Positions 23,901-62,592 of a stretch of DNA of 64,000 nucleotides are shown here, one piece after another; the first letter of the stretch is position 1; every line of letters starts with the position of its first letter. Location: assembly GCF_021028975.2 (NCBI RefSeq), contig NC_059430.1, positions 120,962,001 to 121,026,000 of the forward strand, in the 5' to 3' direction. The position numbers and the translations under genes are program-made. The notes under the pieces were generated by a model, which did no database searches, had not been told where the DNA came from, and saw only the letters and a program-made list of their open reading frames with translations. This DNA comes from Sphaerodactylus townsendi. Its lineage: Eukaryota.

Positions 23901-24036
23901 TCGCTGTATTCATCCGCCAAAGATGTAGTTCCGGCCTTCATCTGTTTCCCACTTATATTCCTCCGCAGGGCAGATGTTGTGTGGTGGTACCGCATTTGGT
24001 GCGCCAGTATCTGTCCGCATATTGCTATAATCCCCT

Positions 24037-24037
<1 letters not shown>

Positions 24038-24104
<67 letters not shown>
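24038..24104 (+). repeat. (CAT)n microsatellite in SMG9 intron 1
   Basis: About 22 perfect CAT units. Confidence 0.95.
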
Positions 24105-24105
<1 letters not shown>

Positions 24106-25400: not shown

Positions 25401-28400
25401 GTAAGATCTTAAGTCTGGGGACTGGGTTGGGAAGGAAGGACCAACTTTGAGGGCTCAGCCTAACCCCTTCTGTTTTTTTTAGGACCCCATGGACGAGCCA
25501 GTGGGATCCATGATGCAGAAGACCCCGATCATCCTGGCCAAGCCACCTGCAGAAAGGGTAGGGTGGGGAAGCACAGTCTGTAACCTGATGGGGTCCTAGT
25601 AGCTGATTCACTTCCGCAGCTTGTCTGGATGGTAATGCGGAAAAAGCTTACTGTTTAGAACCTAGTTGAACTAACAAAACCTTCATTTGTGGACTGTTTA
25701 AATCTAATCCATAGTCCAGGAATCAACACTTGGTAGCCCCATTCTGTCTGTTTCCCTTAGGGGATAACATACAGACTCCCCCCACAACTAAGTTGTAGTT
25801 TCTTATTCTTATTATTCTCTTTGCATTTCCTAAAACAGTAAAGTACAGAGATGTCTCAGCCAGCAGGGTAAAAGAGATGGGAGATCCCCTCTTTTTCTCA
25901 CACACTCCCTTTGCTTTCCCTTTCTTTTCATTGCTTTAGTTTGTCTCAGAAAAAGATGTTAGTTGGGTTGTATATTCCTTTGCCACAGACTCAACGTGCT
26001 GAACCTTCTTTGTTGTCCTAGGTCCACCTTGGTCCTAGTAGTGCCTACCTAGCCCTGCTCCCCCATCTGTTTGAAAGATTGAATGAACCGTAATTGCTCT
26101 TGTATCAAAGTGCCATGTTCAATAATGCACAAAATAATGGTTTTGACAAAGGGGAGTGCACAAAAATGAATTATGTTTCTCACATTCGTTTGGGACTATA
26201 TTCTAATGTGGAAGCATACAGTTTTCTCGATCGCTCCCCCACCACTGACTTTCCCAACATCTTTTTCTGAGGCAGAGTATATCTGAATGGGATGTTTGGA
26301 AAATGGATGGAGGAGGGTAGAGAACTCTGAGTCCGGCTGGTACCTGTGCAAGGATCCATAATGTTTTAGGTGGCATGGAGGGGAATGGAAGAAGCACTCC
26401 CACCCCCCACCCTAGTCAGTGGGATCTGTCAATTTGAGCAAACGCAGCTGCATATCTGTTTGTGGCCTTGAGAAGATTTGGGTGTTGGTCTTTGTGTCCT
26501 TGCAGTCCAAGGGAGCCCCGCCCGCAGCTCCCGCTCCAGCACCTGCTGCTGCCCCACCTATCGAGAAGCCCATTGTGCTGATGAAGTCCCGGGAAGAAGG
26601 CAAAGGTCCCGTGGGGGCAATAGAGACATCCACCCAGCCCCCTGCAGCTGTTGCCAAGGTGGAGAAAGAGGGCCAGCGCCCCACGCAGCCGGTCTATCAG
26701 ATCCAGAACAGGGGGATGGGCTCAACCGCATCCAGCGGCGTCATGGACCGTAAGTATAAAGCAGGACTACAGTTACACAGGAAAGGGGGCAACAAGGGTT
26801 GCCAGTTAAACATATCTAATAGTTAACAGTGCAACCAAGGTTTGTGAGATTAAATCCAAGGTTTTAATTATTTTGTTTATGAAATTTATTCCCCACCGTT
26901 CCTTTGACAAGCCAGGCTCGGAGTGGCTTACAAGAAAGTACAATGCAATTCGTGAGACACTCTGAAAAGGCACTAATAATGATAAATAAATGTATTAAAA
27001 TATATAACACTATTAAAAAAAAACTCCTATGGAAACATAGCCGCATCCAACAGCCAATCAGTAAAATGATCTGGTGGAAGCAATGCAAGAACTGCAAGAC
27101 ATACACAGTGACTGACTGAAAGTTCTTGTCTTGCAAGCCCTGTGGAAGGTAACAAGTCCTGCCAGGCACGTGTGTCCTCTGACAAAACATTCCACCACGA
27201 TGGGGCTGCCAGAATGACGCTCCTGGGGATGTTGGTTTTGAGAGCTTTGAGGAGCAGCAGTGGCGTAGTGGTTAAGAGCAGGTGTACTCTAATCTGGAGA
27301 AACCGGGTTTGATTCCCCACTCTGCCGCTTGAGCTGTGGAGGCTTATCTGGGGAATTCAGATTAGCCTGTGCACTCCAGCACATGCCAGCTGGGTGACCT
27401 TGGGCTAGTCACAGTTCTTCGGCATGCTCTCAACCTCACTCACCTCACAGGGTGTTTGTTGTGGGGGGGTGAAGGGAAAGGAGTTTGTTAGCCCCTTTGA
27501 GTCTCCTTGCAGAAGAGAAAGGGGGGATATAAATCCAACTCTTCTTCTTCCATGAAGAAAGAGATGTGCAAAGCGAGAGTTGGATTATTATGTGAGGTGG
27601 GATCCTGGGGATCTGCCTGTAGGGTTGTCCACTAGCTCCTTCTGACTCCCAACCCTTTTCGTCTTTCCAGCTGTGGTCGGTCAGGCCAAGCTGCTAGCCC
27701 CAGAGAGGATGAAACATAGCATCAAGCTCGTGGATGACCAAATGAACTGGTGCGACAGTGCCATTGACGTATGTATTCATTTTATGTAGTTATGCTATTT
27801 GTGGCCCTCCTTTGGGACTCTTAAGTGAGTTGATACAATGTACAGGATGGGTCATTCAATACACAATTGAATGGTGCCTTGCAGACCGCATTACCCCATA
27901 TGTCCCTTCTAGGCCTCTGCGTTCAGCAGAGGCCAATTTGCTGCTGGTTTCCGGCCCCTCCATGATGCGGCTGGTCTCCACTCGGGCCAGGGCTTTTACG
28001 GCCCTGGCCCCTGCCTGGTGGAACACCCTTCCTCCAGCTGTCCGGGCCCTGCAGGATCTTGGTGAGTTCCGCAGGGCCTGTTCCACCGGGCTTGGTGAGT
28101 TCCGCAGGGCCTGTTCCACCGGGCTTTTGGAGTGTCTGGCCACTGATGTGCCCCCTCCCCGCCTCTACTCTAGTTTCCTGTGTTGGGGTCCCTTTACCAC
28201 CTATGGGACCCCTCTCCCCCCCTTTGGGAAGGTCTTTTAATAAGGATTTTGTTGCTGACGCTGTTTTTATTTGCAGACCGCTGTGTTTATTTTAAATGGG
28301 TTTTAATTATATGTTGCTTAATTACGTTGTTCACCGCCCAGAGCCCTTCGGGGGTAGGGCGGTATAAAAAACTCATAAATAAACAAATAAATAATATAGT

Positions 28401-34400: not shown

Positions 34401-37400
34401 ATGCTGCCACAGGAGGTGGTGATGGCCACTAACCTGGATAGCTTTAAAAGGGGCTTGGACAGATTTATGGAGGAGAAGTCGATCTATGGCTACCAATCTT
34501 GATCCTCTTTGATCTGAGATTGCAAATGCCTTAACAGACCAGGTGCTCAGGAGCAACAGCCACAGAAGGCCATTGCTCTCACATCCTGCACGTGAGCTCC
34601 CAAAGGCATCTGGTGGGCCACTGCGAGTAGCAGAGTCCTGGACTAGATGGACTCTGGTCTGATCCATCAGGCTCTTTCTTATGTTCGTATGTTCTAATGG
34701 ACTCTTTATCTGGTGAATTACATTGCTGGGTGACCTTGGGCTAGTCACAGTTCTTCAGAACTCTCTTAGCCCCACCTATCTCCCAAGATATCTGTTGTAG
34801 GGAGAGGAAGGGAAAAGGAGTTTGTAAGTTCCTTTGTGTCTCCTTACAGGAGACATAGGGGATGGTTGGGTATAAAACCAAACTCTTCTTCTTCATTTCC
34901 CCTTCCTGTTAATGCCACATTTTGGTCAGTTGCCCTGAGCAGCAAAGACAGAATATGTTTTGTTTGTGATGGTTGTGAAACTCCTGTTTTCTCCCTGTCT
35001 CCAGTCTTTCTCCAGAACAAAGCCAAGAGGGAGAACTTCTGTCCCCGGAACCTGAAGCAGATGCACCTTGTGGTCGATAAGATCATGATGCACTCCCATC
35101 TGAAATACAAGGGTAACGCATCTTTCTGAGTCTGTCCAAAGGCCAGAAGGCCAAGTTAAAAACCGTAACGGATTGTGGAGTGAAAGCAGCGTCGTGAGCC
35201 CTCTGTGGTGTGAGCGGCATGGAGAAGAAAGGGAGATTGGGTTCATATCAGTATCAGTGCTGGTGGTTGGCCTTCGGAAGCAGAGTTTGGCTTTTCTGAA
35301 AGCAGAGATGGAGAAGAGGCTTGTAAGCAGAGCTCTGTGATTCTTGGTGAAACCCTCAAGTCTACTGAGGTCTAAAAAATTGCTCCATGTGGATTTGAAT
35401 TCTGGTACAGAATTGTAACTTTTTAAAATTAATTTTAATAGATAAAAAAATAACATAGCAGAAAAAGAGAACAGAATCAAATAATTAGTTCTAAAGACTA
35501 AGGCCATTTGTGCGCAGGGCTTCTCCTCGGGCAAGCCCACTTTACATTCAGGGAAGATTTTCAGTTACACGACAGATTTGTGACATTATCCAAGTTTGAT
35601 TTTCATTTCCACAACTGTCCCAACACTGCTGCGTTTCTGATGAATGGGAGGATGGATTTTCCCATCACGGGCAAACTCCAACCTTTTCCTCTAAATTGCC
35701 ACTAAATCTGTACCTGAACAAGTGTGCCGTGCTCGCCTCAGGTTTTTTTCCCCTCCTTCCCACCTTTTCCCCTCCCACCGACTGGTATGTTCCCCCCTTT
35801 CTTTGCTCACTCTCCCCCCCATTCAGCTGCCAGCTCCCTTGTTTCTCCCCCAGCATTCCCCATTTAGTTTCTGCTGCTGCTTGTGATGCCAAGCCTGCAT
35901 GGGGGGGGGGGGGGGGGGGAGAGAGAGAAGCTTGCTTCCGTAAGATCTGGGTTCTTTGCTCCAAAACTCCACTCCAGCTGAGTTCTCAAATATTTTTATT
36001 GAAAAAATTCAAAACAAAGAAATGAAACAAACTTTGCTTACAGAGATTTCTCAGCTAGGCACATTCCTTTTTGGATTCCTTTGTCCCCATTCTGGAAACC
36101 CATGGTCCAGAGATGCTTCTCCGGCCAAGTCCCCAGGTGGAATCTAAAATCATTTGTTTCCACCTTCACAGGAAAACTGTGTTCCGGCCACGAGGTAACT
36201 TAGGCCTTTGAAGTGCATTCTGGCACCTTTGTATCAGGCTTCCTGTTCTCCTTGTAGGAGATCAAAGATCCTTTTTACAGTTATGTGTGAGTTCCTTTGC
36301 TTCAGCGATAGCATCTTTCCATCATACTTCCCCTCTTTGGAAAGATGGATCCCTGCTTTGCAAAGGGTGGGGGGAGTCAGCATGGTGCCTGTGATGATTG
36401 GGAGAGTTCTCTCCCATAATCATAGGCAACCCCCTCCTCCGTTTGCAAAGCTAGATCCTGGCTTTGCAAAGGGTGGGGGGGGGGGAACCAGCAGGGGGCG
36501 TGCCTGTTGGCTGATATTTCCAGATAGACTGCGTATCCCACAGAAAACATGCAGCACAGTAGAACCTAGTAGATTTGATACCAAAATATCCTTTTCCAAA
36601 GAAACAGATGGCACAGAAGGAGGACTCGGGACGCTAGTGAGAGGGGAATTGTAAATGGCCCAGGATCCAGTGGAAGATCCTCTTACCCAGCAGTAGCAAA
36701 ATAGCATGGGTGCTACTCAGCCCTCTGCAAGCACCTGCAACTCCAACCAATGCATGAATACCATGCAGATATGTTGGTTCAACTACATGCAATTTTTTAA
36801 AAAGTCAACTACATGCAATTTTTTAAAAAGTCCTGTAATCATGGGGGAAGGCAGAAACCTAGGGCATCCAAAGCCAAATCCTCTGCAGAAAGAAATTAAT
36901 GCCCTACAACAGATTTGGGGGGAACAGACAGGAGAAAGGGAAGTGTAAAATGAATCCAGTTGCCTTGTGGGAAAAGCATCGGATCAACTGAACGCAAAAC
37001 TCACAGGGAGCCATAAGTGTATAAATGGCCCAAAAAGGGTAAGAACATTATACATATAATATTACCAAATGGTAAAAGTGGTCCCCTGGGCAAGCACTGG
37101 ATCATGATGGGTAAATTACCTGCAGGCTTTTGGTTTGCCACTTCCTTCCCCAGTCATCTCCACTATACTTCCAGCAAGTTGGGTACTCATTTTACCTTGG
37201 AGGATGGAAGGCTGAGTCTGGCTAAGCTGAATCTCCCTCCCAACAGGCACCCTCTCTATGCTGGACTGCAACATATTTCCTGGCCTGCCCCCGAGTTATC
37301 TGGACACAGAGGTCAACCTGTTCTTGCTGCCTTTCATGGACACAGATGCAGACGATGCTTTGCCCAGAGCAGGTGAGGAACCCCTATTCCTTCCTTCCCC

Positions 37401-45234: not shown

Positions 45235-46469
45235 TCAAACCTCAGACTCTAAGGCTTTGATGAGAACACGCTGAGCGTCTTCAGCTACTTCGTTGAGGGA
45301 ACTCCACAGCATGTAGTAGGTAGTGCCAAAGGAGATCCCCCCAGCAGCCAGGGAACCAAATATGGGCACTGTGCTGGCAAAATACTCTACCACCATCAAC
45401 GCTCCACCACCAGCCTTGGTAAGCATCTTCACCACTACATCCTTGGAGATCTCTTTGTACTTGAGGGACTTTCGATAACCGCAGATCTCTTCCACAGAGT
45501 TTACTTACCTTCTCGTAACTTGTCCAAGGACTCATCGTCCAGGCCAAAGTTCCTGCGGTACTCTGAGAGGGACTTGACTAGGATGGTCACATCGCAGGCT
45601 ACGGAGAGACCGGGGATGGGCACGGCCGCCACACCGCATGAGACAGTGGCCAGCTTCCAGATCTGTTTCTGCAAGGCCTGTTTCTTTTTGCGCAAGATTT
45701 CTAGGGAGATGTTGGGCAGGGCTAGGAGGAAGGCGTGTCTCTTGTGGCCTGGAAGCTCTCGCTCTAAAGTCTCCTCCAGCAGCATAAAGTCATACTTGCT
45801 CAACTCCCAGCTGGAAAGGAGAAAGATGCGGGGAGAGACCACATTTTCAGCCTCTAAGCACTCTTGGCAATTCTGGCGGATTAGCTGAAGGATGCTCCCC
45901 TCATCATAGGTGTGCGGTCGACGCTTTCTGGCGGCCTCCAAGTCCAAGTCTACTTTGGAACGTACAAAATAGAAACGTTTGCCCTGCTTCTGGATCTCTT
46001 GGGCCAAGCGAGCATGGTTGGATCTGAAGCGCTCTGAGGCGAGAAGGATAAAGAAGTCGTAGCAGGAGAAGTCCACCTGTTTCAGGTACTTGTCGGACTG
46101 AAAGTTGGGCGTACCGATTCCCGGCAGGTCCCAAACCATCACGTTGGGGTGCTTGGGGTGTGGATACGGCGTGGGCTTTAATGTTGTCTCCACCACTCCA
46201 GTGGGGGCAGCTCCATGATCTTCGTCCCCTAGGCCCCGGATAGCGTTGACAAAAGAGGACTTGCCGGAGCCAGACTCTCCTGTTACTGCGATATTCAGGT
46301 GAGCGTTCTCCAAGGTCTGTAAGTTTTCCATAATCTTGGACGCAGCGTCCGCCATTCTTCCTTCTTCGAGAGCATCTTTAATCTGTTCAATGTCTTCTTC
46401 AGTAATGATGTCATATTCATCTAGGAATTGAGCCTCGTTGGGCGAAGCCATTGGGGGCTGGTCCACCAT
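45235..46469 (-). CDS. IRGC: Immunity-related GTPase, IRGC-like (interferon-inducible GTPase 5 family, GKS type), with a frameshift at ~45470-45520
   Basis: G1 GESGSGKS, G3 WDLPG, G4 RSKVD; YPHPKHPNV, LPNISLEIL, FGLDDESL. The second ORF (45235-45495) supplies IPIFGSLAAGGISFGTTY-type sequence and NEVAEDAQRVLIKALE, as in IRGC. Acceptor ctcaag| at 46485. Tail-to-tail with SMG9, as in mammals. Confidence 0.88.
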
Positions 46470-47014
46470 AAAATCAAGTCGAGGCTTGAGAGGAAAAGGG
46501 AGAGAGAACACAACCCATACCATTAAACATTTTAAAGAAACCAACCTTCTTTCCCCAATTTGGGAACCCTTGCCTGTTTCTTACCACTATACTCCGCAAA
46601 GTCTGAAGCTTTCCTCGGGTCTAAGAAACCGTCTTCTTCTGCAGGAATAAGCAACCTTTTATAATTCTAGAGATGAACTATATCAACATTCAAATAAACA
46701 AAACATCAGTATATGAAACTGTAAATATCACCTAGTGTTACTCATAGTTGATACGTGGATCCATATAGTTTCCGCAGCTTAAATGCTGGTTACGTACGAT
46801 TCCTTTATTAGGAACACATGAAGTTTGAGATCTCACAATAAGAAATAAATATACAGAGGTCTCACAAGAAGTAAAAATATTGAGAGCAGTAACTCTGTGC
46901 AATTGGCTTAGTGCAGTGGCATAAAGGTAAGCACGACTCATAACTGGATTGCTGGCAATTGTTCACCTCTATCAGTTTCCCTTTCTGTAAAATACCTCTA
47001 AGGAGGCCTTAAGC

Positions 47015-47160
47015 CCGTGGTGGTGAACCTTTGGCACTCCAGATGTTATGGACTACAATTCCCATCAGCCCCTTCAAGCATGGCCAATTGGCCATGCTGG
47101 CAGGGGCTGATGGGAATTGTAGTCCATAACATCTGGAGTGCCAAAGGTTCGCCACCATGG
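47015..47160. mobile_element. Palindromic hAT MITE
   Basis: Near-perfect hairpin; TSD ccttaagc on both sides. Confidence 0.88.
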
Positions 47161-49649
47161 CCTTAAGCCAAAGAAAGAATCACTTAAATTGGAGGATTTC
47201 AAACCTTGCTGAGAAGAGCAGTAGATTACAGACTATTGTGTTTTACGTCCCTGGGTTGAGGCTGTATGGAGGACAGGAACAGGGTGCACAAAACGACAAG
47301 GAATCTTTTTCATTTGAGCCAGTGTGGTTGGAGTGGTTGTCAGACGAAATTCTGGAAGGCCCAAGTTTACATCCCCACTCGCCATTAAATGTACAGGCCA
47401 ATCTTGTGCCAGCCACTCTCTCTGAGCATAATGTACCTCACAGAGTTGTTGTGAGGGTAAAATAGAAGATGGGAGAACGACGAACACTGCCTTGAGAGGC
47501 CTGAAGAAAGAACATGATAAAAAAATGTCCTAAATAAATTCTGTGTTGGGTATAAAACCATGTTTCCTCAAACAAGGTCTCTGCTAGAACCACATACCAA
47601 GGATGAATGGGTCAGATACAACCTGGCAAGGAAGCCATGGAAAAGAGTGGGGTATCGTTTCCAGAGGGCTTGGGAACTTTGGAAAGGTATAAGAGCTGTT
47701 TGGGAGATGAAACCAACGCAGATACATACAATCCTGTCAGCTTTAGGTGATTATTTATTTATCCCCTCCTTCATTCAAAGAGCTCAAGGGGATGCACTTG
47801 GTCCCCCTTAATTAATCCTTACAACAATCCCGCGAAGTAGATTTAGGTCTGAAAACATATGACTGATCCCACGTCTTGCCGAGCAAGAATTTGAACCCAA
47901 GTTTATCCAACACTCTTGCTTCTACTCCACACTGGCTCACATTGTTATTGGTTGGAGGATCCAAATCCTCATTTTAAACCCCTAGGCTAGAAGTGGCCAA
48001 CCTATGGTGATCCAGATGTTCATGAACTACAATTCCCATCAGCCCCGTCAGCATGGCCGGCAGGGGCTGATGGTAACTGTAGTCCATGAACATCTGGATC
48101 ACCATAGGTTGGCCACCCCTGCTCTAGGCCATGCTGAATGAAAGCCCATCCTTCAGCCACCCTAGTTACGGGGAAAACTAATCTGAATTAAGCAACTACG
48201 GACTCCCAAAAAGAATGGGGTGTTATTCAACCACGTCATTCTATTTTCTTAAATACCATCCCCAAGGAGCACAGACCCCACATTTGTCTGTACATTCAAG
48301 GGGGTGCAGCGTGTTAACAACCAACAACCCCTGTCATTTGTCTGGGGTGTTCAACCGCCCAGGGGGAAGCAAAGAAAAGAAGTTATCATCCGAACAATGA
48401 ACCTTGGTTAAGGATGGTGAATAGGTGAAAATTCATAATTCCCCCAGGGACATATAGGAATGCACCCTACACTGCTCTATTGCCGTTGTAACCATTGCAG
48501 CAACAGCCTCTACAACTCGAAGAAAAAAAAACTCCTGTTTCTTTTCTTCTTATATACATATATCCCAAGGACACAATCCCATTTGTCTCCTGCGGACCCA
48601 CACCCCAAACACCCACAGCAGTTCACACAACCAAGCCTCCCATTACGGCATCCCCTCTGGGCCTTTTCTTGCCCCCTTCCTCTCCCAACACATGACCCAT
48701 TTCAACTGCACTCTCTTCCATATTTCATCCCTTTGTGCTATTTACTGGCTCATCTTGCGTCCTACTGCCTTATCCTTTATACTACCCACCCACCCCACCT
48801 GCAGTGCCTGTAGCAGGGCCATAACCTTTAAAGTGGCCAAGGGCTGGAAATTCAGAGCACAATCTCTCTCTCTTTTTTTTTAATCCGTTCCAATTCTGAC
48901 CTATCGCAATAGGAAGTAAGTCAGACCCCCCCCCTTTTAAAATCGGTTCCAATTCTGACCTAGTGCAACCGGAAATAAAAGGAAATATTGCTAAACTGTC
49001 CGACAAGGGGGTGTCTGTGTGCGGCCATTTTTATAACACTGCAAATTATTTATTTATTTATTTATTAAACTTTTATACCGCCCCATCCTCTAGGGGCTCT
49101 GGGCGGTGTCCTCTCTTATGTCCTCTCTTCCTTTAACGTTCCAAAAAAGTCATTATGGCTGATTCTGTATGGGCCAAAAACAGCGGTGTGAAAACAGTAT
49201 AAACCCTTTTACACCATTTTAAACCCTTTTGCGCCATTTTCACACCGTTTTCACACTGCTGGCCCATGCGGAATCAGCCTGAGATTTTGGTAACCAGCAC
49301 CCTGATTTAAATTGCTTCATTGGCTGATTCACTGGTTCAAAGGGGAAGGAATAAACTTTTTCGTAAAAAGGGGAGGGAGGGAAGGGTGCAGTGCTCTAAT
49401 TGAGGAGGTGAGAAGCTGCATTTGGCTGGGATTCTCCTTGGGACAGAAGTCTGAAAGGGCCAGGCTTTGCATGTGGTCGCTGCAAAATCACGGGGTGGGG
49501 TGGGGTGTGGGGATCTTCATTCATGCCCATTGCAAGTGGGATCCATCCCAGGGGTTACAGCAGGACTTCCAGCACCCACAGTAGCAATTCTCCATTCCTC
49601 CCGCCCTCAAAAACAGATGCACCAGCCATAGCCACGAAACTTAGGGCGA

Positions 49650-50650
49650 GTCACACAAACTGTAAAGCAATAACATCCAGCAGGAGGTGAAAACGAAACT
49701 CCACGGATCTCAGCGGAGGTTCAAGAGCCACCAAGCCGACAAACACACACACACACACACGCCCCCCGCTACGTCCTGCTAAACGTGTCTTCCAACCGGT
49801 AGCCCACGACAGTCCCGAGCAGACCCCCTCGGACGACCCACCGCCACTCCGGGGAACCTCTGCTCCCCAAAGCGCAATTTGGGGGATTTTTTTCTTCGGC
49901 CCGGCGGCTTTATTTTTTTTGCAATGCCGCCCGGTGTTCCAAAGCCCCTGATTTCTTGCAAACTGTTTGCAAACCACACACACATTGCAAGCCGAGCACT
50001 TGACCCACCAGAAGCGACTCCAGCGAAGGACCGGCGAGGCTTTGCCGGAGTTTCTCGAGGGTGTTTGAAGTTGCTACGGAGGAAGCGCAGCCGGTGCAAA
50101 AAAAGTCCGCTTCCTGCCGCCGCGGAAACCACACTCTTTCTGCCCGGGGTGGCGCGTGTGTATGGGCGGGCACGCGTTGGCGGCTCCACGCTGCCCCCTG
50201 CTGGAAGGCACGCGTGCAAAGCCAGATGGACCCATGCCGTGTGGGAAAAACCCGTTTCATTCATTTTTTGTCAGGCGGGAGATTGCACTGGAAATGGGCG
50301 CGGGAGCAAGGACGTTCAAAGCAATTGGAAAGTCCCGGGAAGTCCACTGCAGAAAAAAGTAAATAAAAGCTCTGCTGCGGGCGTACACTAAGTCACGTGG
50401 TTTGCAACTTGTCAGAAAGTGAAAGTGAATTTTTGTGCGTGTGATTTCCCGTGCAATGAGAGGAGATGGCCGAAAGAGCGGCACCGATTCTGTGAGTACC
50501 AAACGCGATAGGGAGAAATATTTGGGTTTGGGATTTTTCACGTGGGATTTTAAACATGCTATCATGATGGGAATTATCAGCCTTCCGCCGCCTGACCCAT
50601 CGCGGCCCCCAAAGCTGTTTGCAGCATCCGGGGAAAGGTTATACCTGCCC
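49650..50650. promoter_or_regulatory. CpG island with ISRE/IRF and NF-kB motifs; putative bidirectional promoter
   Basis: GAAAACGAAACT at 49689-49700 (ISRE); GGAAAGTCCC at 50327-50336 (reverse complement of the canonical kB site GGGACTTTCC), followed by GGGAAGTCC; E-box GTCACGTG at ~50392; GAAAGTGAAAGT at 50415-50426 (IRF-E). Confidence 0.7.
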
Positions 50651-51981
50651 TAACAGCTGTTGTCACTTGGAAAGGGGACCTTGCGCTGGGAATCTGGAGA
50701 GCGTGTAACCTCAGCTTGTGGGTTCTGTGGGGCAGTACTTGGAAGGAGTTGCAAAGAACCAAATTTAAACAAAACAGTTTACTTCTCTTTACAAATAACA
50801 TTAAACATCAACATTTAACATTTACAATTCAAGGTCCTGTTCAGGTTGCATTTCAAGTCCTTCTAGTTACAGTCTACTGATACTGCCAAGTCCAATTCTT
50901 CTTTGCAAGTGGGTTGGCTCCTGAAGACTCCAAGGGCTTGATGAACAGGATGCAACATGATGAAGGTTTCCAGGAGAACTCTCACCCATTACAACCACAA
51001 AAAGAAACCCTGAAACAATAAACTCCAACATTTTCAACATAGCAAAAACAAACAACTACCTTCCCAGTAGTTCCCAATAATATTGCAGTTTACCTTAACA
51101 AGGTGTTAAGGGCTTATAGAAATCAAGGTCCGAGTCTGGTAGCCTTGTCTTCTCCAAAGAGCTCTGCAGCCTTTCTGCTGCTCTGAGTCTCCACCCCCTT
51201 ACTGGTTCAACCCATTCTGGGCATGGGGGTTACAAGCGCATCCTTCTTCCCAGCGCAGGATCGCTCAGGACAGGTGCAGAAATTCTGCCCGGTTCATTCA
51301 AATTGGGCATGTCCATGCAGTGCTTCCGGCAGCTTTTCAGTGAATTGGGCTGATTTCCCTTGAATGAATATGTCATTCGTATTTAATTTTTGAAAAGTTT
51401 ATTTCACTGCACATAGAAACCCTGGGGCTAGCTAGCTGATCTCTCTTGGAGAAGCGGGCCACTTTGAAAAGTGGACTCTAGCATTTTATCCCGTTTAAGT
51501 CCCTCCCCTCTCCAAACCCCTCCCTCCTCAGGCTCCACCCCCAAATTTCCAGGTATTTTCTAAGATGGAGCTTGCAACCATATCTGCATCTGGAATGATC
51601 TGTGATCCTTTCTGCTGTCCTAGTAGGTGGGTGGTGTCTGTGAACAGGTGCAGTATACAGAATCCATCCATTTAGCACAGGGTTTTCTCCTCTTTCTGGC
51701 AAACGCTTTCCAGGGTACCAGAAGAGAAAGGGATTTTCTGAGGCCTGCTAGTCCAAGCGGAAGGGGATAGAAACAGTTTCTGAACACAGTCTGGGAAGGT
51801 AATGCTGGGATAGCTGCAGGTTAGGTAACAAGGCAAAACTAAGAGAGCAGCTCCATGAAGCCTTGAACACTTGAGGCTGATTTATACTGAACCACACCAT
51901 TAATCCATCAAGGTCAGTTTTGTCCACTCTGACTGACAGCGGCTATCTGGGGCCTCAGATAAAGGTATTTTGCATCCCCAT

Positions 51982-52046
51982 CATTCATTCATTCATTCAT
52001 TCATTCATTCATTCATTCATTCATTCATTCATTCATTCATTCATTC
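51982..52046 (+). repeat. (CATT)n microsatellite
   Basis: About 16 tandem CATT units. Confidence 0.95.
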
Positions 52047-53670
52047 TACCTCTCACCTCCCCAAAGGGCTCATCTGACCCTTTTATCTGGACATAGTGGG
52101 GATTAGGGCTGGGCATTTGAGTGAAGCCAAATGGGAAAAAGCCATGAAAAATACCATTCCGGTTTTTCTACGTTTGTTTCAGCTCATCTGAAGAAACAAC
52201 AACCTCATCAGGCTATTCAGAAAAAGCCGCATAGCCCAAGCCGAAAAATGCCAAATACTGTTTCGGCTTCCAGCAGCAGAACAGCCAACAGAGCTGCAAA
52301 TAGCTCTCCATCCCCTTCCCCCTTTATCTTTGAAGTCAGAGCCAGTGACCAAATCCCTGAAAAGAGCTCTCCCAGAAGAAAATTTTTCAGGTTGATTTTA
52401 ACAACCTGAATTTTTTTGAAAAAATCCAAAAAAAATCAACATGGGGATTCAGCTTTGTTTTTGCTTTGGTTTTGGCCTTTTCAGAAAGTGCTGGGTCTTT
52501 TAAAGCCATACCTGAAAAAATTGCGCGCACACCTAGCGAGGATTGAATCTGGGATCTTCCAGCTTGCAAAACAGGTGCTTTATCATTGAGTCACTTATTT
52601 ATTTTACGGTCATCGACCGATAGCTATATACAAAGTTCAGCTAATAATTCCATCAAATAATAGATCCAAAACAAGATTTGAAAACATCAAATATATAACA
52701 CATGGTACAAAAACTGTCTAAAACATTGGTTTATTTTTCTTGACAGGAGATAGAGAGGCACAGCAGATTGAAACAGGAAGGTAAAAACAAGAAAAATAAA
52801 CCAATACAGCCTGAAAAACAGATAAAATGCTTGGAGCCCGGTACAAGCACTGCACTCCCTGATAGGCAGGAACAATACTGGGGATCTAAGATGGAGTCCA
52901 ACCATTCCACAGGAAGTGACATCGTTTAGTCCTGCCTCCCTGAGTATAGGTTGGAAATCACCCATCCAAGATGCCCTCATCGCCCCCCAGGAGAAGGCCC
53001 CTTCAGGGTAAGTACCAATGGTCCGTTCTTGAGAGAGGGAGCAATAAGCCAGGAAATGTTGTCAGATGTTGTTGATGCTCAATATCTTGTATTCTCTGTT
53101 TAACCATAGATTTTGGCTGAACAGTATGCTGGGCCAGAATAATTGAGTCAAACTTTTTCGGCTTCCAGCAGAGAACAACCAGCAGAGCTGCAAATAGCTT
53201 TCCATCCCCATCCCCCTCCATCTTTATGGTGGTGTGTTGGGTGTGTGACATGATTTGGCAAACAACAGGCAAGAAAGAAAGGGCCTTATTCTCCAATCAT
53301 TTAGTTCCTACGGTTGAACCATTTACAGTTGCAAGCTAGAGAAAAGGAAATAGAAGATTATTAACTTTGAACGTTCCCTAGTACAAGAGTGTATGGTTAT
53401 TGTCACTTTGAAAATATAAGAAGTGGAAGCAGACTGTAACTTAAAAACAAAACAAAGTATGGAATATTGTCTTTGGACTATTGGCTACCAGTACGTTTTA
53501 TGGTTCCACCTGTCTCTATCAGTTCCCTCTCAGCACTTGGGAGAGCCCCCGCAATGGGGCTGGAACTCAGTACCAGCGAGTACCACCACAGAAAAAGCCC
53601 TATTGGCTGCCAAAACTGATGTTGTCAAATTTCCTTCCTTTCTTCCCTCTCTCCCTCCCTCTTTAGGAAT

Positions 53671-54575
53671 ATGGCTGACATCTTCAGAAATGGCCTTCAG
53701 TGGGCCCTTGGTACATTCCTGCGATCCTTTATAGCCCAGGTCAAGAGAGTCCTGATATTTTCAACTGTGGTGATTGTGGGTGCTGTTCTCTTGTCTTCTA
53801 CTTGGCTTGCTGTCCAAAAGGTGGATTATTCTCTGTCAAGCACTGAGCGTGAGGTCGCTGTGACCAACAAGCATAAGTGGACCCCACACAGTGTCGTCAA
53901 AATCCTAAGGGACTTGCTGCACTATGTTGCTGTCCTGTTGTCTTCCTATGAACCCCTGACCCTTGGGAACCTCTTGAGGCACCGCGACCGCCTGAGCGGG
54001 GTGAACTATCTGCTCCAGGCTTGTTTCAACGAAGCCATTGATGGCTTTTGCCGGGAGCCTTTCTCAGTGCAAGAGAATTCCAGAATGGTCATCCACTGCG
54101 ACGGACAAACCGTACAGTTCTTCTCCGGCAACGGCGACTCGCGAAGATTTCGGTGTACATCTTGCACAACGCCATCCAATTCGACGTCCAGGAACGGACG
54201 GCTGAAATGTACCTTGCTAGGCTGTCTATTCGCCAGGAGCCGTTGAGCATTCGTGATCTCCTGCGGGTGAAGAGCAACTTACAGTCCTGGGGTGTGCTTT
54301 CGGAAGGGCTGCGGAGCTGCCTGGAGTTTGCCGTGCAGAAATATGCCGAGGAGCCTTTGTGTGTCCAAAACAACGCGGACATGGCTATAGACTGTGACGG
54401 CCAAGTGCTGAAATTCGCTTCCGGGCGTCAGAACAATCACATCAATATCTATGACGTGCGAGATGGCACCATTCATTACCACATCAGGCTCTCTGGTTTC
54501 TGGGCCAGTATTGTGGGGTTCTTCAGGGGGAGCCCAGACCACACACGGGGGAAAAAGTTGTTGCAGTTAGAGTGA
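53671..54575 (+). CDS. Uncharacterised ~300-aa protein with an N-terminal TM helix and two ~90-aa tandem repeats; one frameshift near 54140
   Basis: Polypyrimidine acceptor ctccctctttag| 4 nt before the ATG. ORFs 53671-54246 and 54048-54575 join at ~54140. The repeats share EP..VQ.N..M.I.CDGQ...F.SG...I..Y. AATAAA at 55173. Confidence 0.75.
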
Positions 54576-57500
54576 ATTAACTGTTCACTCTTGTGTCACT
54601 TGAAACATGGATATATGGTAGCAGTGGAGCAGCAGTGGCGTAGGAGGTTAAGAGCTCGTGTATCTAATCTGGAGGAACCGGGTTTGATTCCCAGCTCTTG
54701 CCGCCCTGAAGGGTTAATGAAGGAAAAACTTATCTGGGGAATTCAGATTAGCCTGTGCACTCCACCACACATGCCAACTGGGTGACCTTGGGCTGAGTCA
54801 CAGCTTCTCCAGAGCTCTCTCAGTCCCACCTACTTCACAGGGTGTTTGTTGTGAGGGGGGAAGGGCAAGGAGATTGTAAGCCCCTTTGAGTCTCCTGCAG
54901 GAGAGAAAGGGGGGATATAAATCCAAACTCTTCTTCTTCTTCTACTGTTCTTCCCGGCTGATGCCACATGGGGAGGGTGATGTCACAGTTGAATCTTCCA
55001 TTTTAAAAAAGTCCTAAATCTTCTTGTTCGTGGGAAAATTCCCCTCAGACTGCATGCGGCTATCAGTGTTATTTTTGAATGCTTTTCCATTTGGGGGAAA
55101 AAGTCAAATCTTCTTGCTTGTGGAAAAAATAGTACGTCAAAGCAAAGACTAGACTTTTAACTAATAACACTGAATAAAAACATTTAACAAAACATTTTGC
55201 CTAGCTTTCCATAGGAAAGGAGGCATTTTGAGATTGGTTTGTTTGTTTAAATGGGGCATTAAACTTATCATCGCCCACCTGTCGTTTGAAGCGGATAACC
55301 CAGAAAGGACTGAACCTGTTTTTGCATGATTGAACAGATGGTAAAAGCATCCTTGGGAAATTTATTCAGGTGGCACCTTGCTATGGCTTAACTTAAGTGG
55401 TTTATTACAGGGCAGATGAAAATAAATGTTTTTTTTAAATCAGATTTTTTTACAAAATTAAATCAGATGTTTAAAATTTAAATTGGATTAAAAAAATACA
55501 AGGCCTTTTGAGAAAAAAAATCTAGATTAAGTAATTTTCTATTTAATGTCCAGGGAAGATGTTGGCCGAGAAAGTGTATATATTCCCTTTAAGAATCCTT
55601 ACCTTAGAGATCATTTATCATGTATATTGGGTCTTTTATGAGGCAACCATTTGGTCTTGCTAGGTTGTTTACAGCGCTGGCCCTCATTAAAATTGTAAAC
55701 CGTGTTTGTGTTTAGTTTCAGTAGTGTTATTCTTTAATTAACAGAATTGGCTTTTACAAGGCCAGATTCTAAACCAGACAGATAGGTCTTAATTGCCATG
55801 AATGCACAGGTGGGAGTCATCTCCCTCATTTCTATTCGAGACCTAATTGGTTGATTATTGATCAAATGATCTACATGAGCCAATTCTATAAGACCCCTGA
55901 AACTATTCTAAAGACGTATTGTCGAAGGCTTTCACGGCCGGAATCACTTGGGTGCTGTGTGGTTTCCGGGCTGTATGGCTAGGTGTTACCTAGCAACATT
56001 CTCTGGCCTGACGTTTAAGCCTGCATCTGTATTTTAGCATCTTCAGAGGATCCTCTGAAGATGCCAGTCTGGTCAGCAGCCTCAGGAGAAAAGAATACTA
56101 AGCTGAACGCATACAACTCAGAAGCTCCGGCCAACTGCCTAAAATATTCTAAAGACATTCATTCATTCTACAGAGATTCATTCATGAGGATTCTCCCGAT
56201 AAAGGCTGAATAGCTTTGTATTGTATTGCTTTTTTACTTAGACTGTGGGGCTACGAGAAGAGGCTGATTTTTTTCCTTTTTTCCTTTCCTTTTTTAATAA
56301 AATTTTTAAAACTCAGCTGTTTGAGAGTATTTGGATAAAGAACCCTGGTTTTGGTACATTACTGGAAAGTCACCCAGCTTAGGGTAACCTTTTTTCACAA
56401 ATGTACATCATAGTCCAAAGGTTATTCACCATGAAATAAAGATTAATGTTGGATTATGTAGCATGTAACTGTATATTCATGCTATGTTTAAATTTTTTGG
56501 TGAATGAATTCCATTAATCCATTCACATTGTCATGCTCTTCCATAGATTTCTATAAGATTATTTTGAGCAGTTTTTCCATCTGGGAGATATTATCACACA
56601 TGCTGGGTTTTGTAGTTCTCAAAACTGTGAATTTGTGTCTGCAGAGATAATGTGCCTCTTCACAGGAAAAAATGTTATAAAATAAGCATACAGAGTTGCG
56701 AGAAAGACCTTAATCCAGTGGTGGGATTCAGCTGGTTCGCACCACTTTGGCAGAACCGGTTGTTAAAATGGTGCTTGTAAACAACCAGTTGTTAAATTAA
56801 CTGAATCCCGCCATCGGAACCGGTTGTTAAATTATTTTAATCCCACTATTGTCTTAATCCCATTGTTCCTTTGAAAATCTATGTACACAGAATCAACCCC
56901 TTTCCCCTTAAGTGCTAAGTTTCACAAAGTGCAGTGAATAGAAGATTGTTTAGCATGGAATAGGTCTGCGTAAATGTCTAAGTGGGAGGAGGGTGGGACA
57001 GACAGTAAAAATGAAAGTGAAACTTTTTAGCAGAATATTCCACAAGACTTAGGATCTTTGTGTGTATAGCTTGAGGTTAATTGTATTATTCTCTCCCTGG
57101 AGGAGAAAATCGATAGTGGCAGCAGGCCATAAAAGAGGCCAAATTTAGGAATATTTTAATGAAGTTCCTCAGCAGTGGTGTATTTGCCTTGGGACAGGGG
57201 TACCCTCTGTCCCTGGGTGCCAAATCAGCCCCCGCCCCCACAATGAGATCAGGGAAGGCCCGGCAAGGCAGTAGGAATTCCTGCTGCCTTGTAGATCCTA
57301 ACTGGCACTCTCGGCCCCACGCATGTCGTCATTGACATGGGCAGGACCAAGGAAGCCAGAGGACACCCCCCCCCAGTCTCACCCCCTCCCCAGCTGCCGG
57401 CTTCCCCCCAACCCCGGCAGTCCTCTGGAGAGGACAGAAGCAACTGGAAGGCTCCGTGCTGGGGTCTTTGCTTTTATAAGCTCAGGGGTGTGCACATCTG

Positions 57501-58422: not shown

Positions 58423-60528
58423 TTAGGAGACCTGGAGAACCACCAGTAGTCCGGCAAGGCCAAGAACGAGGATTGGGAAGTTGGTCCAGTGTGTTGAGTC
58501 CCCACCATTACTACTATTGCTTGTCTCATTGTTATCATTGTTATTGTTGTCGCTACCCCCAAAATTGTTGCTACCCCCAAAATCAGATCCACTTGATCCA
58601 TCATTTGGCTTAGGTTTAGGTTTGGGCTTAGGTTTCAGAGGTTTAGACCCTGAAGGAGGTTTGGGTCTGTAGACAGGACGGGAGGGGACTCGACGAGGCT
58701 GAGCTTGGTTCTGCAACTGTGCTGACCCAATTTCCTGCCTATCCACTTTTCTTTGGCTCATCCTCACTGTTTCCTGCACAGTGTTTCTTAAACCGCAGGG
58801 CACCAGGGTTCCAAAGACTTCCAATCTGGCTTCAGGAAAAGAGGTCCCATTTGTTTTCTGAACAGTTCGAGCCAGACTACTCATTGCAGGCCTGGTTACA
58901 ACGGATGGCATAGCACTACTTCTGCTGTGAGATGTGGCAACGTTTGCATTCTCACGCGTGGTTCTGGATGGTACATTCTCCACAGGATTCTCCAGGTGCT
59001 TGGTTGCTCCACAGAAGTAGTAACATCTACTTCCCCTAAATTGCAGCTCCACTGTTGGGCGCCCTTTCAAAGAGAACGTAGCTGAAAGAAGAATGAATAT
59101 CTGGTTTCAAAAATGACGTCTTGGTACACCAAATATTTCTGTCCTGGCAATTATTACTGCAGAATCCCATCCCTTACCCCAACCAAAATGGTGAATTTTT
59201 CATAGTCATTGAATAGCTCTCACAGCAGTGTTAGAGAGCATGTGATCCTGCAACGTTGGGGATGCTAAGCAAGTCAAGGTCTGGATGAAGCCAATTTGGA
59301 GCCCTACAAACAGCTTATGGGCTTCTTTTATTATGGTGAGAAAGGAAGCCTCTCTGACAACTAGAAAAGAGAACATAGGTCCAGCATGTTCAAAAACCAT
59401 GTTGGCTGGGAAGGGGGAGGCGCTATATAGTAACGAGAATTAGTTGAGATTAAGTGAAAAAGTTGTCTGTATCCAATAGTAAATTCTATGATGGTAGATT
59501 AACTTCCACTTGAATTGGAGGATGCATTTAAGAGCTCCGTGGAACAAAAATGGGTTTTACAGATGGATTTTCAAGAGTAGATAATGAACATTTTTGGAGA
59601 TAAGGAGGAAGTCATGATGTAGAACAAGGAATCTCGGCAGCTGAGTGTTGTAGGATGTACACAAAATTGGGGGAGTAGCATCATTAGGGTGGTCCAGAAG
59701 GACCATTTGGCCCGAATCTAACATTGATGGAGGGCCTCAAATGTGGATGTTTTGCAATATTTGGAATCCTGTTTTGGCCTTTCTTCATTTTCTGGAATAT
59801 TGGGAGCCTCCAGAAACAGAAACAGTCTGCACCTTCTTCAACTTCTGAGAGGCCATGCGTGTGGGTTTGGGATGGGGATTACTTATTAGGAAATTCTCAT
59901 AACAGAGACAGCAGAGCCCTAGGAATAAATCTGGAGCAACCTGCTCACCATGAGCTGAATCTGAAAATAATAAGCACCATAACACAATTGTCCTCTACAG
60001 TGATGGGTGTCAAACAGGAAGATCCTTCTGGCTCCCTGAACCTGAGCGATACACCATGGTGACTTTTTCTTTGTGTGGGCTTTATTTGAAGAAGAACATT
60101 TTGGATTGAAAGACTTACCACTTTCATTCTGAGCACCTTTCCCTTCCTGTCCCCACAACAGACACCTTGTGAGGTAGGTGGGGTTGAGAGAGTTCCGAAG
60201 AACTGTGACTAGCCCAAGGTCACCCCGCAGGAATGTAGGAGTGTGGAAACACATCTGGTTCACCAGATAAGCCTCCACCACTCAGGTTGAGGAATGGGTA
60301 ATCAAACTCCGTTCCCCAGATAAGAATCTACCTGCTCTTAATCACTACAACATGCTGGCTCTCAGATCAAGCATTGGTCACAAATCTGTGTGTGTGTGTG
60401 TGTGTGTGTGTTGGGGAGAGTACATCTACAAGGATCTTTTGGAATAGCAAAGACTTACCGCTTTCATTCTGAGCACCAACCACACCCAGAAGACCCCAGA
60501 GAACGCACAGGGTCAACGGGAATAGCAT
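58423..60528 (-). CDS. Uncharacterised secreted, probably GPI-anchored low-complexity protein (242-246 aa)
   Basis: Signal-peptide exon 60528-60459 (MLFPLTLCVLWGLLGVVGA-QNES, phase-1 donor g|gtaagt). Optional 12-nt micro-exon 59960-59949. The last exon 59081-58423 is in matching phase, S/T/P/K/N-rich, and ends SNSSNGG...FPILVLGLAGLLVVLQVS*. Confidence 0.7.
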
Positions 60529-62196: not shown

Positions 62197-62592
62197 TCTT
62201 TCTCATAATACTAGAACCAGGGGGTATATATTGAAAATGCTGGGGGGAAGAATTAGACTAATAAAAGGAAACATTTCTTCACACAACGCGTGATCGGTGT
62301 TTGGAATATGCTGCCACAGGAGGTGGTGATGGCCACTAACCTGGATACCTTTAAAAAGGGCTTGGACAGATTTATGGAGGAGAAGTCGATTTATGGCTAC
62401 CAATCTTGATTCTCTTTGATCTGAGATTGCAAATGCCTTAGCAGACCAGGTGCTCGGGAACAGCAGCCGCAGAAGGCCATTGCTTTCACCTCCTGTATGT
62501 GAGCTCCCAAAGGCACCTGGTGGGCCACTGCGAGTAGCAGAGTGCTGGACTAGATGGACTCTGGTCTGACCCAGCAGGCTCTTTCTTATGTC
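62197..62592 (+). mobile_element. CR1 LINE 3' fragment (shorter copy at ~61270-61447)
   Basis: Same CR1 3' end sequence. Confidence 0.85.

Follow-up and report, generated by a model that had tools for sequence, protein, structure and literature searches.

A head-to-head pair of an IRGC-type GTPase gene and an undescribed reptile gene at a CpG island with IRF-type motifs in the gecko Sphaerodactylus townsendi

The IRG resistance genes of the mouse, Irga6, Irgb6 and Irgd, are interferon-inducible, and their products are regulated by the GMS proteins Irgm1-3. The idea of a partner protein discussed below is modelled on this dependence of a GKS effector on membrane-bound regulators. Head-to-head gene pairs that share a CpG island are a second point of reference; in vertebrates the typical members of such bidirectional pairs are housekeeping or DNA-repair genes. 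The third is IRGC (IRGC1/CINEMA, 'interferon-inducible GTPase 5'), located in human at 19q13.31 (PMC1297648). In both mouse and human, IRGC is testis-specific and not interferon-inducible, with no ISRE or GAS element within 10 kb (PMC1297648; PMC9232189).

In the 64-kb stretch of S. townsendi DNA analysed here (the window), an IRG GTPase coding sequence on the minus strand and an uncharacterised coding sequence on the plus strand are arranged head-to-head with one CpG island between them (49600..50600; GC 0.56). The profile search, the open reading frames and the CpG observed/expected ratio of the island (0.92, vs 0.38 window-wide) place all three where a first-pass annotation had put them, with the island ~3.1 kb from the main coding exon of each gene. 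The main IRG coding exon (45235..46469, minus strand, stop TGA at 45237-45235) matched Pfam IIGP (PF05049) with an E-value of 5.2e-107, residues 18-312 of its first piece aligning to profile positions 2-296 of 375, and the last 86 amino acids aligned with the C-terminus of the orthologues. Alignment also moved the start codon from 46451, as first annotated, to the orthologue-homologous ATG at 46469-46467. The nearest matches were 411-aa gecko proteins named 'interferon-inducible GTPase 5-like' (83-87% amino acid identity), and a 100% match confirmed the species as S. townsendi. The G1 motif, GESGSGKS, is of the GKS class (GxxxxGKS; not GMS) and is invariant among the aligned orthologues.

Searching the window with phmmer against PDB identified an exon of SMG9 at 26419..26826 on the plus strand (human SMG9, 6l54_C, E 1.5e-18). 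SMG9 is the neighbour of human IRGC. In our locus comparison it adjoins the orthologous IRG gene in five other reptiles, and an SMG9-like gene is tail-to-tail with the IRG gene in the Chelonoidis, Thamnophis, Podarcis and Sceloporus loci. On the basis of this tail-to-tail adjacency, the minus-strand gene is, as judged from gene order, the positional orthologue of mammalian IRGC, and the IRGC-like identity first proposed for it is upheld by both gene order and the Pfam match. Like the gecko gene, mammalian IRGC combines the p47/IRG fold with a GKS-type G1 motif and strong sequence conservation, carries its coding sequence in one long exon after non-coding exon(s), and has SMG9 as a tail-to-tail neighbour. 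What sets the gecko gene apart from mammalian IRGC is the CpG island with ISRE/IRF-E motifs that it faces, and its head-to-head neighbour, for which no mammalian relative could be detected. Absence of interferon-response elements near the promoter, together with constitutive testis expression, marks the IRGC group, whereas three ISRE/IRF-E matches (46974, 49689 and 50415) lie <4 kb upstream of the gecko IRG coding exon. With the mouse resistance genes it shares the GTPase family and ISRE-type elements in a putative promoter. The mouse genes, however, are organised in tandem clusters and their regulators are themselves IRG (GMS) proteins, whereas the gecko gene belongs to a conserved divergent pair and its candidate partner is an unrelated repeat protein.

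The first-pass annotation had placed each coding sequence in a single exon behind a splice acceptor and had considered it plausible that the first exons of both genes lie in the island. Acceptors were indeed present. The one ahead of the IRG coding exon (AG at 46485..46486, minus strand, the exon beginning at 46484) is also used in the Paroedura models (locus L002, 6198) and is present in contig L006 of a related gecko. In RefSeq isoforms from Paroedura and Podarcis, IRG translation begins in a small exon separated from the main exon by 0.7-2.4 kb, and in Podarcis this small exon itself abuts the CpG island. The search located it in Paroedura (L002 7312), Hemicordylus (L003 7806) and G. kuhli (L001 2721). 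In S. townsendi, the alignment shows a decayed remnant of this alternative exon (the 'MAAK...' exon of other lizards) at 48520..48610 (minus strand), in which neither an ATG nor a donor was found. Since the small exon has decayed while the coding-exon acceptor has been kept, an upstream IRG exon is still needed in S. townsendi. The 460-aa IRG model of Paroedura could be reproduced only as an island exon (9804-9674, with a GC donor) joined to the main exon. Within the window, the block at 50175..50222 (minus strand) is 83% identical by blastn to Paroedura L002 9740-9787, inside the annotated IRG exon 1, and is conserved with G. kuhli as well. We infer from homology to the Paroedura model that IRG exon 1 of S. 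townsendi lies in the island, at or around this block.

For the plus-strand gene, the single-exon arrangement did not hold, as its coding sequence starts within the island itself. The coding part of exon 1 (50466..50491, plus strand, ATG at 50466) spans 26 nt, encoding 8 codons and 2 nt of a split Leu codon before a GT donor at 50492-93. The ATG, length and donor are kept in Paroedura, G. kuhli and Hemicordylus; in Podarcis the exon is present and non-coding. The RefSeq proteins of Eublepharis, Paroedura and Hemicordylus agree with this exon at their N-termini. Placement of the first exon in the island is thus borne out for the partner gene by a conserved exon; for the IRG gene, homology to Paroedura suggests it. 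Exon 2 (53667..54575, plus strand; strong acceptor AG at 53665-66, ORF 53671-54575, stop 54573-75) encodes a hydrophobic anchor helix and two copies of a ~100-aa alpha/beta domain. In the related gecko, contig L007 has ACG in place of the exon-2 ATG.

The predicted partner protein is ~311 aa long, with a short N-terminus followed by one predicted N-terminal hydrophobic helix, and it is plausibly a membrane protein. Its lizard orthologues share 58-79% identity, and E-values reached 1e-256 against multi-repeat members from turtles. Members of the family were detected in squamates and turtles alone, carry 1-19 copies of the ~100-aa domain, and include Eublepharis LOC129343098, Hemicordylus LOC128332759 and Chrysemys LOC135974678 (19 repeats). 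The S. townsendi protein, with two repeats and a TM anchor, is the orthologue linked to the IRGC locus. Members encoded elsewhere in the genome are variously soluble, equipped with lipidation-like N-termini, anchored twice, or expanded to 5-19 repeats. As the first-pass annotation had suspected, the partner is an undescribed protein, built from a domain without a Pfam family or recognisable solved fold. Pfam searches with the window pieces and the Eublepharis orthologue returned no family, every database name was 'uncharacterized', our literature search found no match, and no reptile interferome paper mentioning either gene of the pair was found. AF2 models were confident, with pLDDT of 82.6 (Eublepharis orthologue) and 88.6 (repeat 2 of the window protein). 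Foldseek against PDB gave best E-values of 0.037 and 0.5, with no solved-fold match; VIA-align with a single-repeat model gave a best Z of 4.9, under the noise level; and ESM Atlas gave TM-scores <=0.37 and feature scores <=0.81 for the partner models. Three observations suggest a cytosol-facing orientation of the repeats: in many family members neither a signal peptide nor a TM segment is present, some members start with MGxC-type motifs, and N-glycosylation sequons are absent from the repeats of 13 orthologues. The K/R residues on the N side of the anchor helix would, by the positive-inside rule, place the repeats outside the cytosol.

We scanned the island for promoter motifs. It contains neither a TATA box nor a GAS element, and equivalent islands are present in Paroedura and Podarcis. 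Both ISRE-type motifs noted at first pass were recovered by the pattern scan. A perfect ISRE, GAAAACGAAACT, is located at 49689..49700 (plus strand) on the IRG side; the near-identical GAAAACGAAAC occurs at Paroedura L002 ~9236, inside the annotated IRG intron 1, and if S. townsendi shares this exon structure, its own copy would also lie in an intron. The IRF-E/ISRE GAAAGTGAAAGT (50415..50426, plus strand) lies 40 bp upstream of the partner ATG, downstream of an E-box, GTCACGTGG (50392..50400, plus strand), whose TCACGTG core is invariant in five squamates. The IRF-E follows the E-box also in Paroedura, G. kuhli (GAAAGTGAAACT) and Hemicordylus (AAAGTGAAAC core), and in Podarcis it has a one-mismatch form. 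A conserved proximal ISRE/IRF-E, as is characteristic of interferon-stimulated genes, is thus found with small variation in five squamates. The same IRF-E together with a kB motif is found upstream of a second IRG paralogue in Hemicordylus, which suggests that the IRF-E is a feature of lizard IRG-locus promoters. An additional ISRE match, GAAAGGGAAACT, is present in the IRG intron at 46974..46985 (minus strand); the corresponding positions of the other loci did not contain it in exact form. Altogether, the window contains 5 matches to the ISRE/IRF-E pattern, two of them in the island, against 0.57 expected (~9-fold), and 0/100 shuffles reached 5. The perfect kB decamer claimed for the island, GGGACTTTCC (50327..50336, minus strand), is present and is the only canonical one there. 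The kB consensus as a whole occurs 17 times in the window vs 15.5 expected, and so this decamer is not above chance by count. Paroedura (GGGAAAGCCC) and G. kuhli (GGGAAATCCC) have kB-like decamers at comparable offsets; the site is only loosely conserved among geckos, and none was found at the corresponding offset in Hemicordylus.

The same head-to-head arrangement was seen in Gekko (G. kuhli), Paroedura, Hemicordylus and Podarcis, so that the adjacency is kept in three infraorders (Gekkota, Scincoidea and Lacertoidea). Conservation of the adjacency, raised at first pass as a synteny survey, is therefore real and incomplete, as in Thamnophis (a snake), Sceloporus and Chelonoidis (a tortoise) the 10 kb around the IRGC orthologue contain no such pair. 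In its head-to-head orientation, its apparently shared TATA-less island and its long-conserved arrangement, the gecko pair resembles the bidirectional CpG-island pairs. In those pairs the TSSs are <1 kb apart; in Paroedura the annotated CDS starts of the two genes are 197 bp apart. The IRF-type elements in its core and its combination of an IRG GTPase with a lineage-restricted gene distinguish the gecko pair from typical bidirectional pairs.

Both coding sequences had been described as open frames; as assembled, both are broken. In the IRG gene the break falls within 45496..45516 (minus strand), where, relative to Paroedura and Hemicordylus, 2 nt are missing next to 45516/45515 and 1 extra nt is present near 45497-45504, producing an in-frame TAA at 45503-45501. 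The partner has 2 extra nt at 54139..54146 (plus strand) relative to four orthologues. If these breaks were real, both S. townsendi genes would be recent pseudogenes in a module that is decaying here and functional in other lizards. The interrupted frames, the truncated or odd products of the deposited annotation (191 aa; 360 aa with an aberrant tail) and the decayed alternative IRG exon are in line with this, but we consider it unlikely. Each break consists of a cluster of 1-2 nt indels within ~10-20 bp, in reading frames that are otherwise highly conserved and contain no other stops, and both genes are intact in the related gecko (contigs L006, L007). Both genes are under purifying selection on either side of the breaks, with dN/dS of 0.11-0.135 for the IRG gene (0.14 for the 86 codons past the break) and 0.22-0.28 for the partner (0.20 past the break). 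Gap-filling with ONT reads is a known source of local indels. The S. townsendi assembly is 10X-based, was gap-filled with low-coverage ONT reads and was then polished (10.1101/2021.08.13.456260). Consensus errors from the ONT gap-fill are the most likely origin of the frame breaks in both coding sequences.

What the pair does when intact can be read in more than one way. The IRGC orthologue might behave as it does in mammals, by analogy, with the motifs serving the partner only. In a broader form of this argument, the pair would be a germline or testis unit rather than an immune one: a constitutive spermatid gene of the sperm fibrous sheath with a partner co-expressed in testis from a bidirectional CpG-island promoter, the ISRE-like GAAA repeats being bound by other factors or irrelevant to interferon. 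The testis restriction and lack of interferon induction of mouse and human IRGC (PMC1297648, PMC9232189) point this way. So does the low dN/dS of the gecko IRG gene, which fits the conserved IRGC lineage and contrasts with the fast evolution of resistance IRGs; TATA-less CpG-island promoters with E-boxes are typical of broadly or germline-expressed genes, and copy-number and repeat expansion like that of the partner family is also seen in reproductive genes. Mammalian IRGC promoters, however, have no ISRE within 10 kb (PMC1297648), whereas the gecko window is enriched for the pattern, the IRF-E has been kept beside the E-box in five species from both sides of the basal squamate split, and the second Hemicordylus IRG paralogue carries the IRF-E and kB motif upstream. 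We regard a testis unit as rather unlikely. The two genes could also be adjacent without shared regulation, the island serving as the partner promoter only and the IRG promoter lying nearer its coding exon, at the small alternative exon or around the intronic ISRE at 46974. All tightly conserved elements (the E-box, the IRF-E and partner exon 1) are within ~110 bp of the partner ATG, the small exon that starts the Paroedura and Podarcis RefSeq isoforms may have its own promoter, and the intronic ISRE match precedes the IRG coding exon by ~490 bp. Separate promoters nevertheless seem distinctly improbable, as the small exon has decayed in S. townsendi with the acceptor kept, the 460-aa Paroedura model needs the island exon, 197 bp from the partner and conserved as a block in the window, and the Podarcis small exon abuts the island.

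With modest confidence, we lean towards an old squamate head-to-head pair, consisting of the IRGC orthologue and a reptile-only partner, that diverges from a shared island with IRF-type elements. Most likely, judging from the motif and exon layout, the two genes are transcribed divergently from this one TATA-less CpG island. The ~200-bp core of the island (roughly 50265-50465) contains the conserved E-box and IRF-E/ISRE, plus the kB-like site in geckos, and the second perfect ISRE is on the IRG side. IRF/ISGF3-type factors and an E-box factor would then drive both genes together, which would make the pair interferon-inducible, and the GTPase and a membrane-anchored partner, its repeats probably cytosolic, would be made at the same time. 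The two proteins may also be functionally linked. One could go further and propose that the partner is an interferon-induced, membrane-anchored adaptor or regulator of the IRGC-type GTPase at a cytosol-facing membrane, the ancestral IRGC lineage having been an immune effector before its co-option for sperm in mammals; we offer this as a speculative extension that is improbable. If it were true, the partner would recruit or control the GTPase much as the GMS regulators serve the mouse IRGs, without itself being an IRG protein, and would be built from a previously unseen domain.

The IRG gene and its uncharacterised neighbour diverged around one CpG island (~49600-50600; GC 0.56, CpG o/e 0.92 versus 0.38 for the window), with the IRG gene on the minus and the neighbour on the plus strand, as the first-pass annotation had read them. 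The IRG piece was 100% identical to a UniProt entry of Sphaerodactylus townsendi, which identifies this gecko as the source of the window. Pfam IIGP matched a 316-aa minus-strand stretch of the IRG gene (46451-45504, E 5e-107) with a G1 motif of the GKS type, and the family C-terminus was supplied in another frame by an 86-aa ORF (45495-45238, minus strand). Alignment with 411-aa gecko orthologues placed the homologous start at ATG 46469, and an acceptor AG (46486-85, minus strand) preceded the coding exon. The best database matches were named 'interferon-inducible GTPase 5(-like)', the name that IRGC carries. An SMG9 exon lay at 26419-26826 on the plus strand (E 1.5e-18 to human SMG9 chain 6l54_C), and an SMG9-sized gene stood tail-to-tail with the IRG gene in Paroedura, Hemicordylus, Podarcis, Sceloporus, Thamnophis and Chelonoidis. 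Judged by these names and this synteny, the IRG gene is the positional IRGC orthologue. Two more CpG islands upstream of the SMG9 exon (14.5-16.7 kb and 22.1-23.6 kb) are presumably the promoters of SMG9 and another gene.

The neighbour ORF began at 53671 on the plus strand, straight after a strong acceptor, and ran in one frame to ~54138 and in another to a stop at 54575. In Paroedura, the annotated neighbour CDS begins within the island with a 27-nt coding segment followed by a GTGAGT donor. The window counterpart of this exon 1 (plus strand) has its ATG at 50466, 26 nt and a donor GT at 50492, and joins the acceptor at 53667 in frame. Its ATG, length and donor were kept in Paroedura, G. kuhli and Hemicordylus, and the RefSeq N-termini of the Eublepharis, Paroedura and Hemicordylus proteins correspond to it. 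In a related gecko (contig L007), the exon-2 ATG reads ACG, so translation there must begin in exon 1; in Podarcis, the island exon was present without an ATG and the gene model begins at the exon-2 Met. We ruled out that L007 and its companion L006, both Logan contigs, are spliced transcripts: what precedes their acceptors is intron sequence, so both are genomic. Database searches of the neighbour protein used the exon pieces separately, and none read through a stop. A tRNA-like SINE (~54618-54700, plus strand) lay directly 3' of the neighbour stop codon. Related copies stood near 54800-54940 and 60136-60200, and the gecko loci contained several.

The Paroedura record gives a 460-aa IRG product with a CDS range ending 197 bp from the neighbour ATG. 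This length was reproduced only by joining an exon in the Paroedura island (L002 9804-9674, with a GC donor) to the main-exon acceptor; a model through the small alternative exon did not give 460 aa and was rejected. A part of the Paroedura island exon has a conserved counterpart at 50175-50222 of the window and another in G. kuhli. Between the island and the IRG main exon, other lizards carry an alternative, small coding exon ('MAAK...'); this small exon has decayed in the window, while the main-exon acceptor was kept. This combination of conservation and decay makes it likely that IRG transcripts of the window begin in the island. The proposal that both first exons lie there was borne out for the neighbour by the exon at 50466; for the IRG gene it is likely from homology to the Paroedura model. 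The acceptors before the two coding exons also stood, but the description as a single-exon CDS did not hold for the neighbour, which has a coding exon in the island. Both frames are broken as assembled.

In the IRG CDS, 2 nt were missing and 1 nt was extra within ~20 bp relative to Paroedura and Hemicordylus DNA, and these local indels give rise to the TAA at 45501-03. Compared with four orthologues, the neighbour CDS carried 2 extra nt at ~54139-54146. The IRG break contains a 'GGTAAGT', but a short intron there was ruled out, since the orthologues read straight across the stretch. Just past this break (45470-45495, minus strand), nine codons were unlike those of all orthologues; this looks like a compensated -2/+2 shift, which would be either a genuine frameshift with compensation or more of the local indel noise. 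Outside the break zones, both CDSs were intact and conserved, with pairwise dN/dS against four other lizards of 0.11-0.135 (IRG) and 0.22-0.28 (neighbour) and equally low values past the breaks (0.14 and 0.20, respectively). Both genes were unbroken in the related gecko (L006, L007). According to the genome paper, 10X linked reads were assembled, gaps were filled with ~6.6 Gb of ONT data and the result was polished. The intact remainder, the low dN/dS, the related-gecko copies and the ONT gap-filling lead us to regard the breaks in both genes as probable assembly errors. The frames as assembled would also fit true pseudogenisation of both genes in S. townsendi, which we consider unlikely; this possibility is independent of the alternatives concerning regulation.

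The GAAANNGAAAST pattern occurred five times in the 64-kb window against 0.57 expected, a count reached in none of 100 shuffles. Two of the five matches were in the island (49689, 50415), one was in the IRG intron (46974), and the fifth (GAAAGTGAAACT, 57013-57024, plus strand) lay 2.4 kb downstream of the neighbour stop, before the next conserved ORF. Matches to the kB consensus were at chance level (17 in the window versus 15.5 expected), so that the canonical decamer at 50327-36 (GGGACTTTCC) has no significance by itself. All three motifs named in the first-pass annotation were present, with the ISRE above chance and the kB count at chance. Neither a TATA box nor a GAS site was found in the island (~49600-50600). 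Directly upstream of neighbour exon 1, five squamates shared the order E-box, IRF-E/ISRE, GATT(T)CC. The E-box core TCACGTG was invariant in all five, and the IRF-E/ISRE read GAAAGTGAAAGT or ...ACT in the three geckos, had a AAAGTGAAAC core in Hemicordylus and took a one-mismatch form in Podarcis. The kB-like decamers 130-180 bp upstream of the neighbour ATG were confined to the three geckos. In Hemicordylus, a second, more divergent IIGP gene (L003 14772-15929, minus strand) lay just downstream of the neighbour gene, with a GAAAGTGAAAGT and a GGGACTTCCC of its own further upstream (18891, 19111), which suggests that IRF-E/kB promoters recur at lizard IRG loci.

The head-to-head pair was also present in Gekko kuhli, Paroedura picta, Hemicordylus capensis and Podarcis raffonei, and with the window it spans Gekkota, Scincoidea and Lacertoidea; this distribution points to a probable origin of the arrangement early in squamate history. 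The adjacency proposed for survey in other genomes held in these four species but not in Thamnophis, Sceloporus or Chelonoidis, where tblastn over the 10 kb upstream of the SMG9-linked IRG gene detected no member of the family. Orthologue-grade neighbour proteins occurred in Anolis, Elgaria, Rhineura and Zootoca, while turtles had more distant ones. Chelonoidis and Dermochelys carried family members in clusters of their own with no IRG gene nearby. Two turtle loci (L004 and L005) showed such local clusters together with long tandem-repeat ORFs, and the repeat period was ~294 nt at 10055-11902 of the Dermochelys locus L005. At a Chelonoidis locus (L008 1-2932, minus strand), a tandem-fused IRG, whose 1269-aa product contains several IIGP domains, stood head-to-head with the tortoise IRGC orthologue, where lizards have the neighbour gene.

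Elsewhere in the window, a 215-aa minus-strand ORF without a Pfam match (58423-59070) encoded a region that is Ser/Asn-rich and has Pro-Lys repeats, followed by a C-terminal tail of hydrophobic character. Counterparts placed equivalently in G. kuhli (47% aa identity) and Paroedura (35%) mark it as a fast-evolving adjacent gene. Three minus-strand ORFs with near-identical translations (1284-1700, 34245-34748, 62203-62607) mark copies of an interspersed repeat, and a plus-strand ORF (23727-24122) ended in ~25 His codons, a CAY microsatellite.

An exhaustive phmmer search with the second repeat of the neighbour protein as query yielded 60 family representatives, and all those with a name were 'uncharacterized protein' entries from squamates or turtles; at the sensitivity that these searches allow, there was no bird, crocodilian, mammal, amphibian or fish member. 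Members contained 1 to 19 repeats. Many lacked a hydrophobic segment or signal peptide, several started with MGxC-type motifs and some turtle members were anchored at both ends, while the IRGC-linked orthologues combined two repeats with a single hydrophobic helix at the N-terminus. AF2 models were confident for the Eublepharis orthologue (pLDDT 82.6, repeats above 90) and for repeat 2 of the window (88.6), and showed a unit of three helices, a four-stranded sheet of two hairpins and one helix. Pfam gave no significant match, Foldseek against the PDB gave E 0.037 or worse, and the ESM Atlas gave no significant match by shape or features (TM-scores at most 0.37). The best VIA-align Z for a single repeat was 4.9, where unmatched models typically reach 7-8; the whole-protein list was uninformative, being taken up by matches to the long N-terminal helix. 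In the 19-repeat turtle protein, Pfam gave many small matches, which we put down to summed noise because no individual stretch reached the threshold. N-glycosylation sequons were rare (2 in 13 orthologues versus 16 expected, none in the repeats), which together with the soluble or lipidation-like paralogues favours repeats facing the cytosol, although K/R residues flanking the anchor helix on its N-terminal side point against this orientation. Complex prediction without alignments, pairing the IRG protein P0074 with the neighbour P0004 (residues 22-273) from the same related gecko, returned no verdict (score 0.00) and is evidence neither for binding nor against it.

To our knowledge, IRGC is the one IRG kept by mammals. 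Mammalian IRGC is regarded as a non-immune sperm gene. In mouse and human, it has neither an ISRE nor a GAS element within 10 kb, does not respond to interferon and is restricted to testis (Bekpen et al., PMC1297648). Unlike it, the lizard orthologue has ISRE/IRF-E elements and a conserved divergent neighbour for which no mammalian relative was found. IRGC1 functions in the sperm fibrous sheath (Kaneda et al. 2022, PMC9232189). A germline co-expressed pair instead of an immune unit is a rival reading that we consider unlikely, and adjacency without shared regulation is another that we find improbable. With the corrections given above, the features described in the first-pass annotation are real. 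The divergent pair, the neighbour island exon, the E-box/IRF-E core and the kept adjacency are well supported, and the first-pass interpretation as a whole is supported in part; co-induction by interferon or NF-kB, the IRG start site in this species, the membrane topology and an effector/partner relationship are what we can only infer. Our literature search found no paper on the pair, the neighbour family or its LOC identifiers, reptile IRGC or IRG bidirectional promoters.

Should the motifs be non-functional, an annotation fix remains, comprising the neighbour start codon and exon 1 and the probable indels in two genes. A putative bidirectional promoter with ISRE/IRF-E elements, which in lizards would serve the IRGC orthologue together with the gene of a lineage-restricted membrane-anchored protein, bears on whether the IRGC lineage was originally interferon-regulated. 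The neighbour belongs to a whole unannotated squamate and turtle family, with 1-19 copies of a confidently folded domain that has no Pfam family, and this family is a candidate for a role in reptile cell-autonomous immunity or reproduction.
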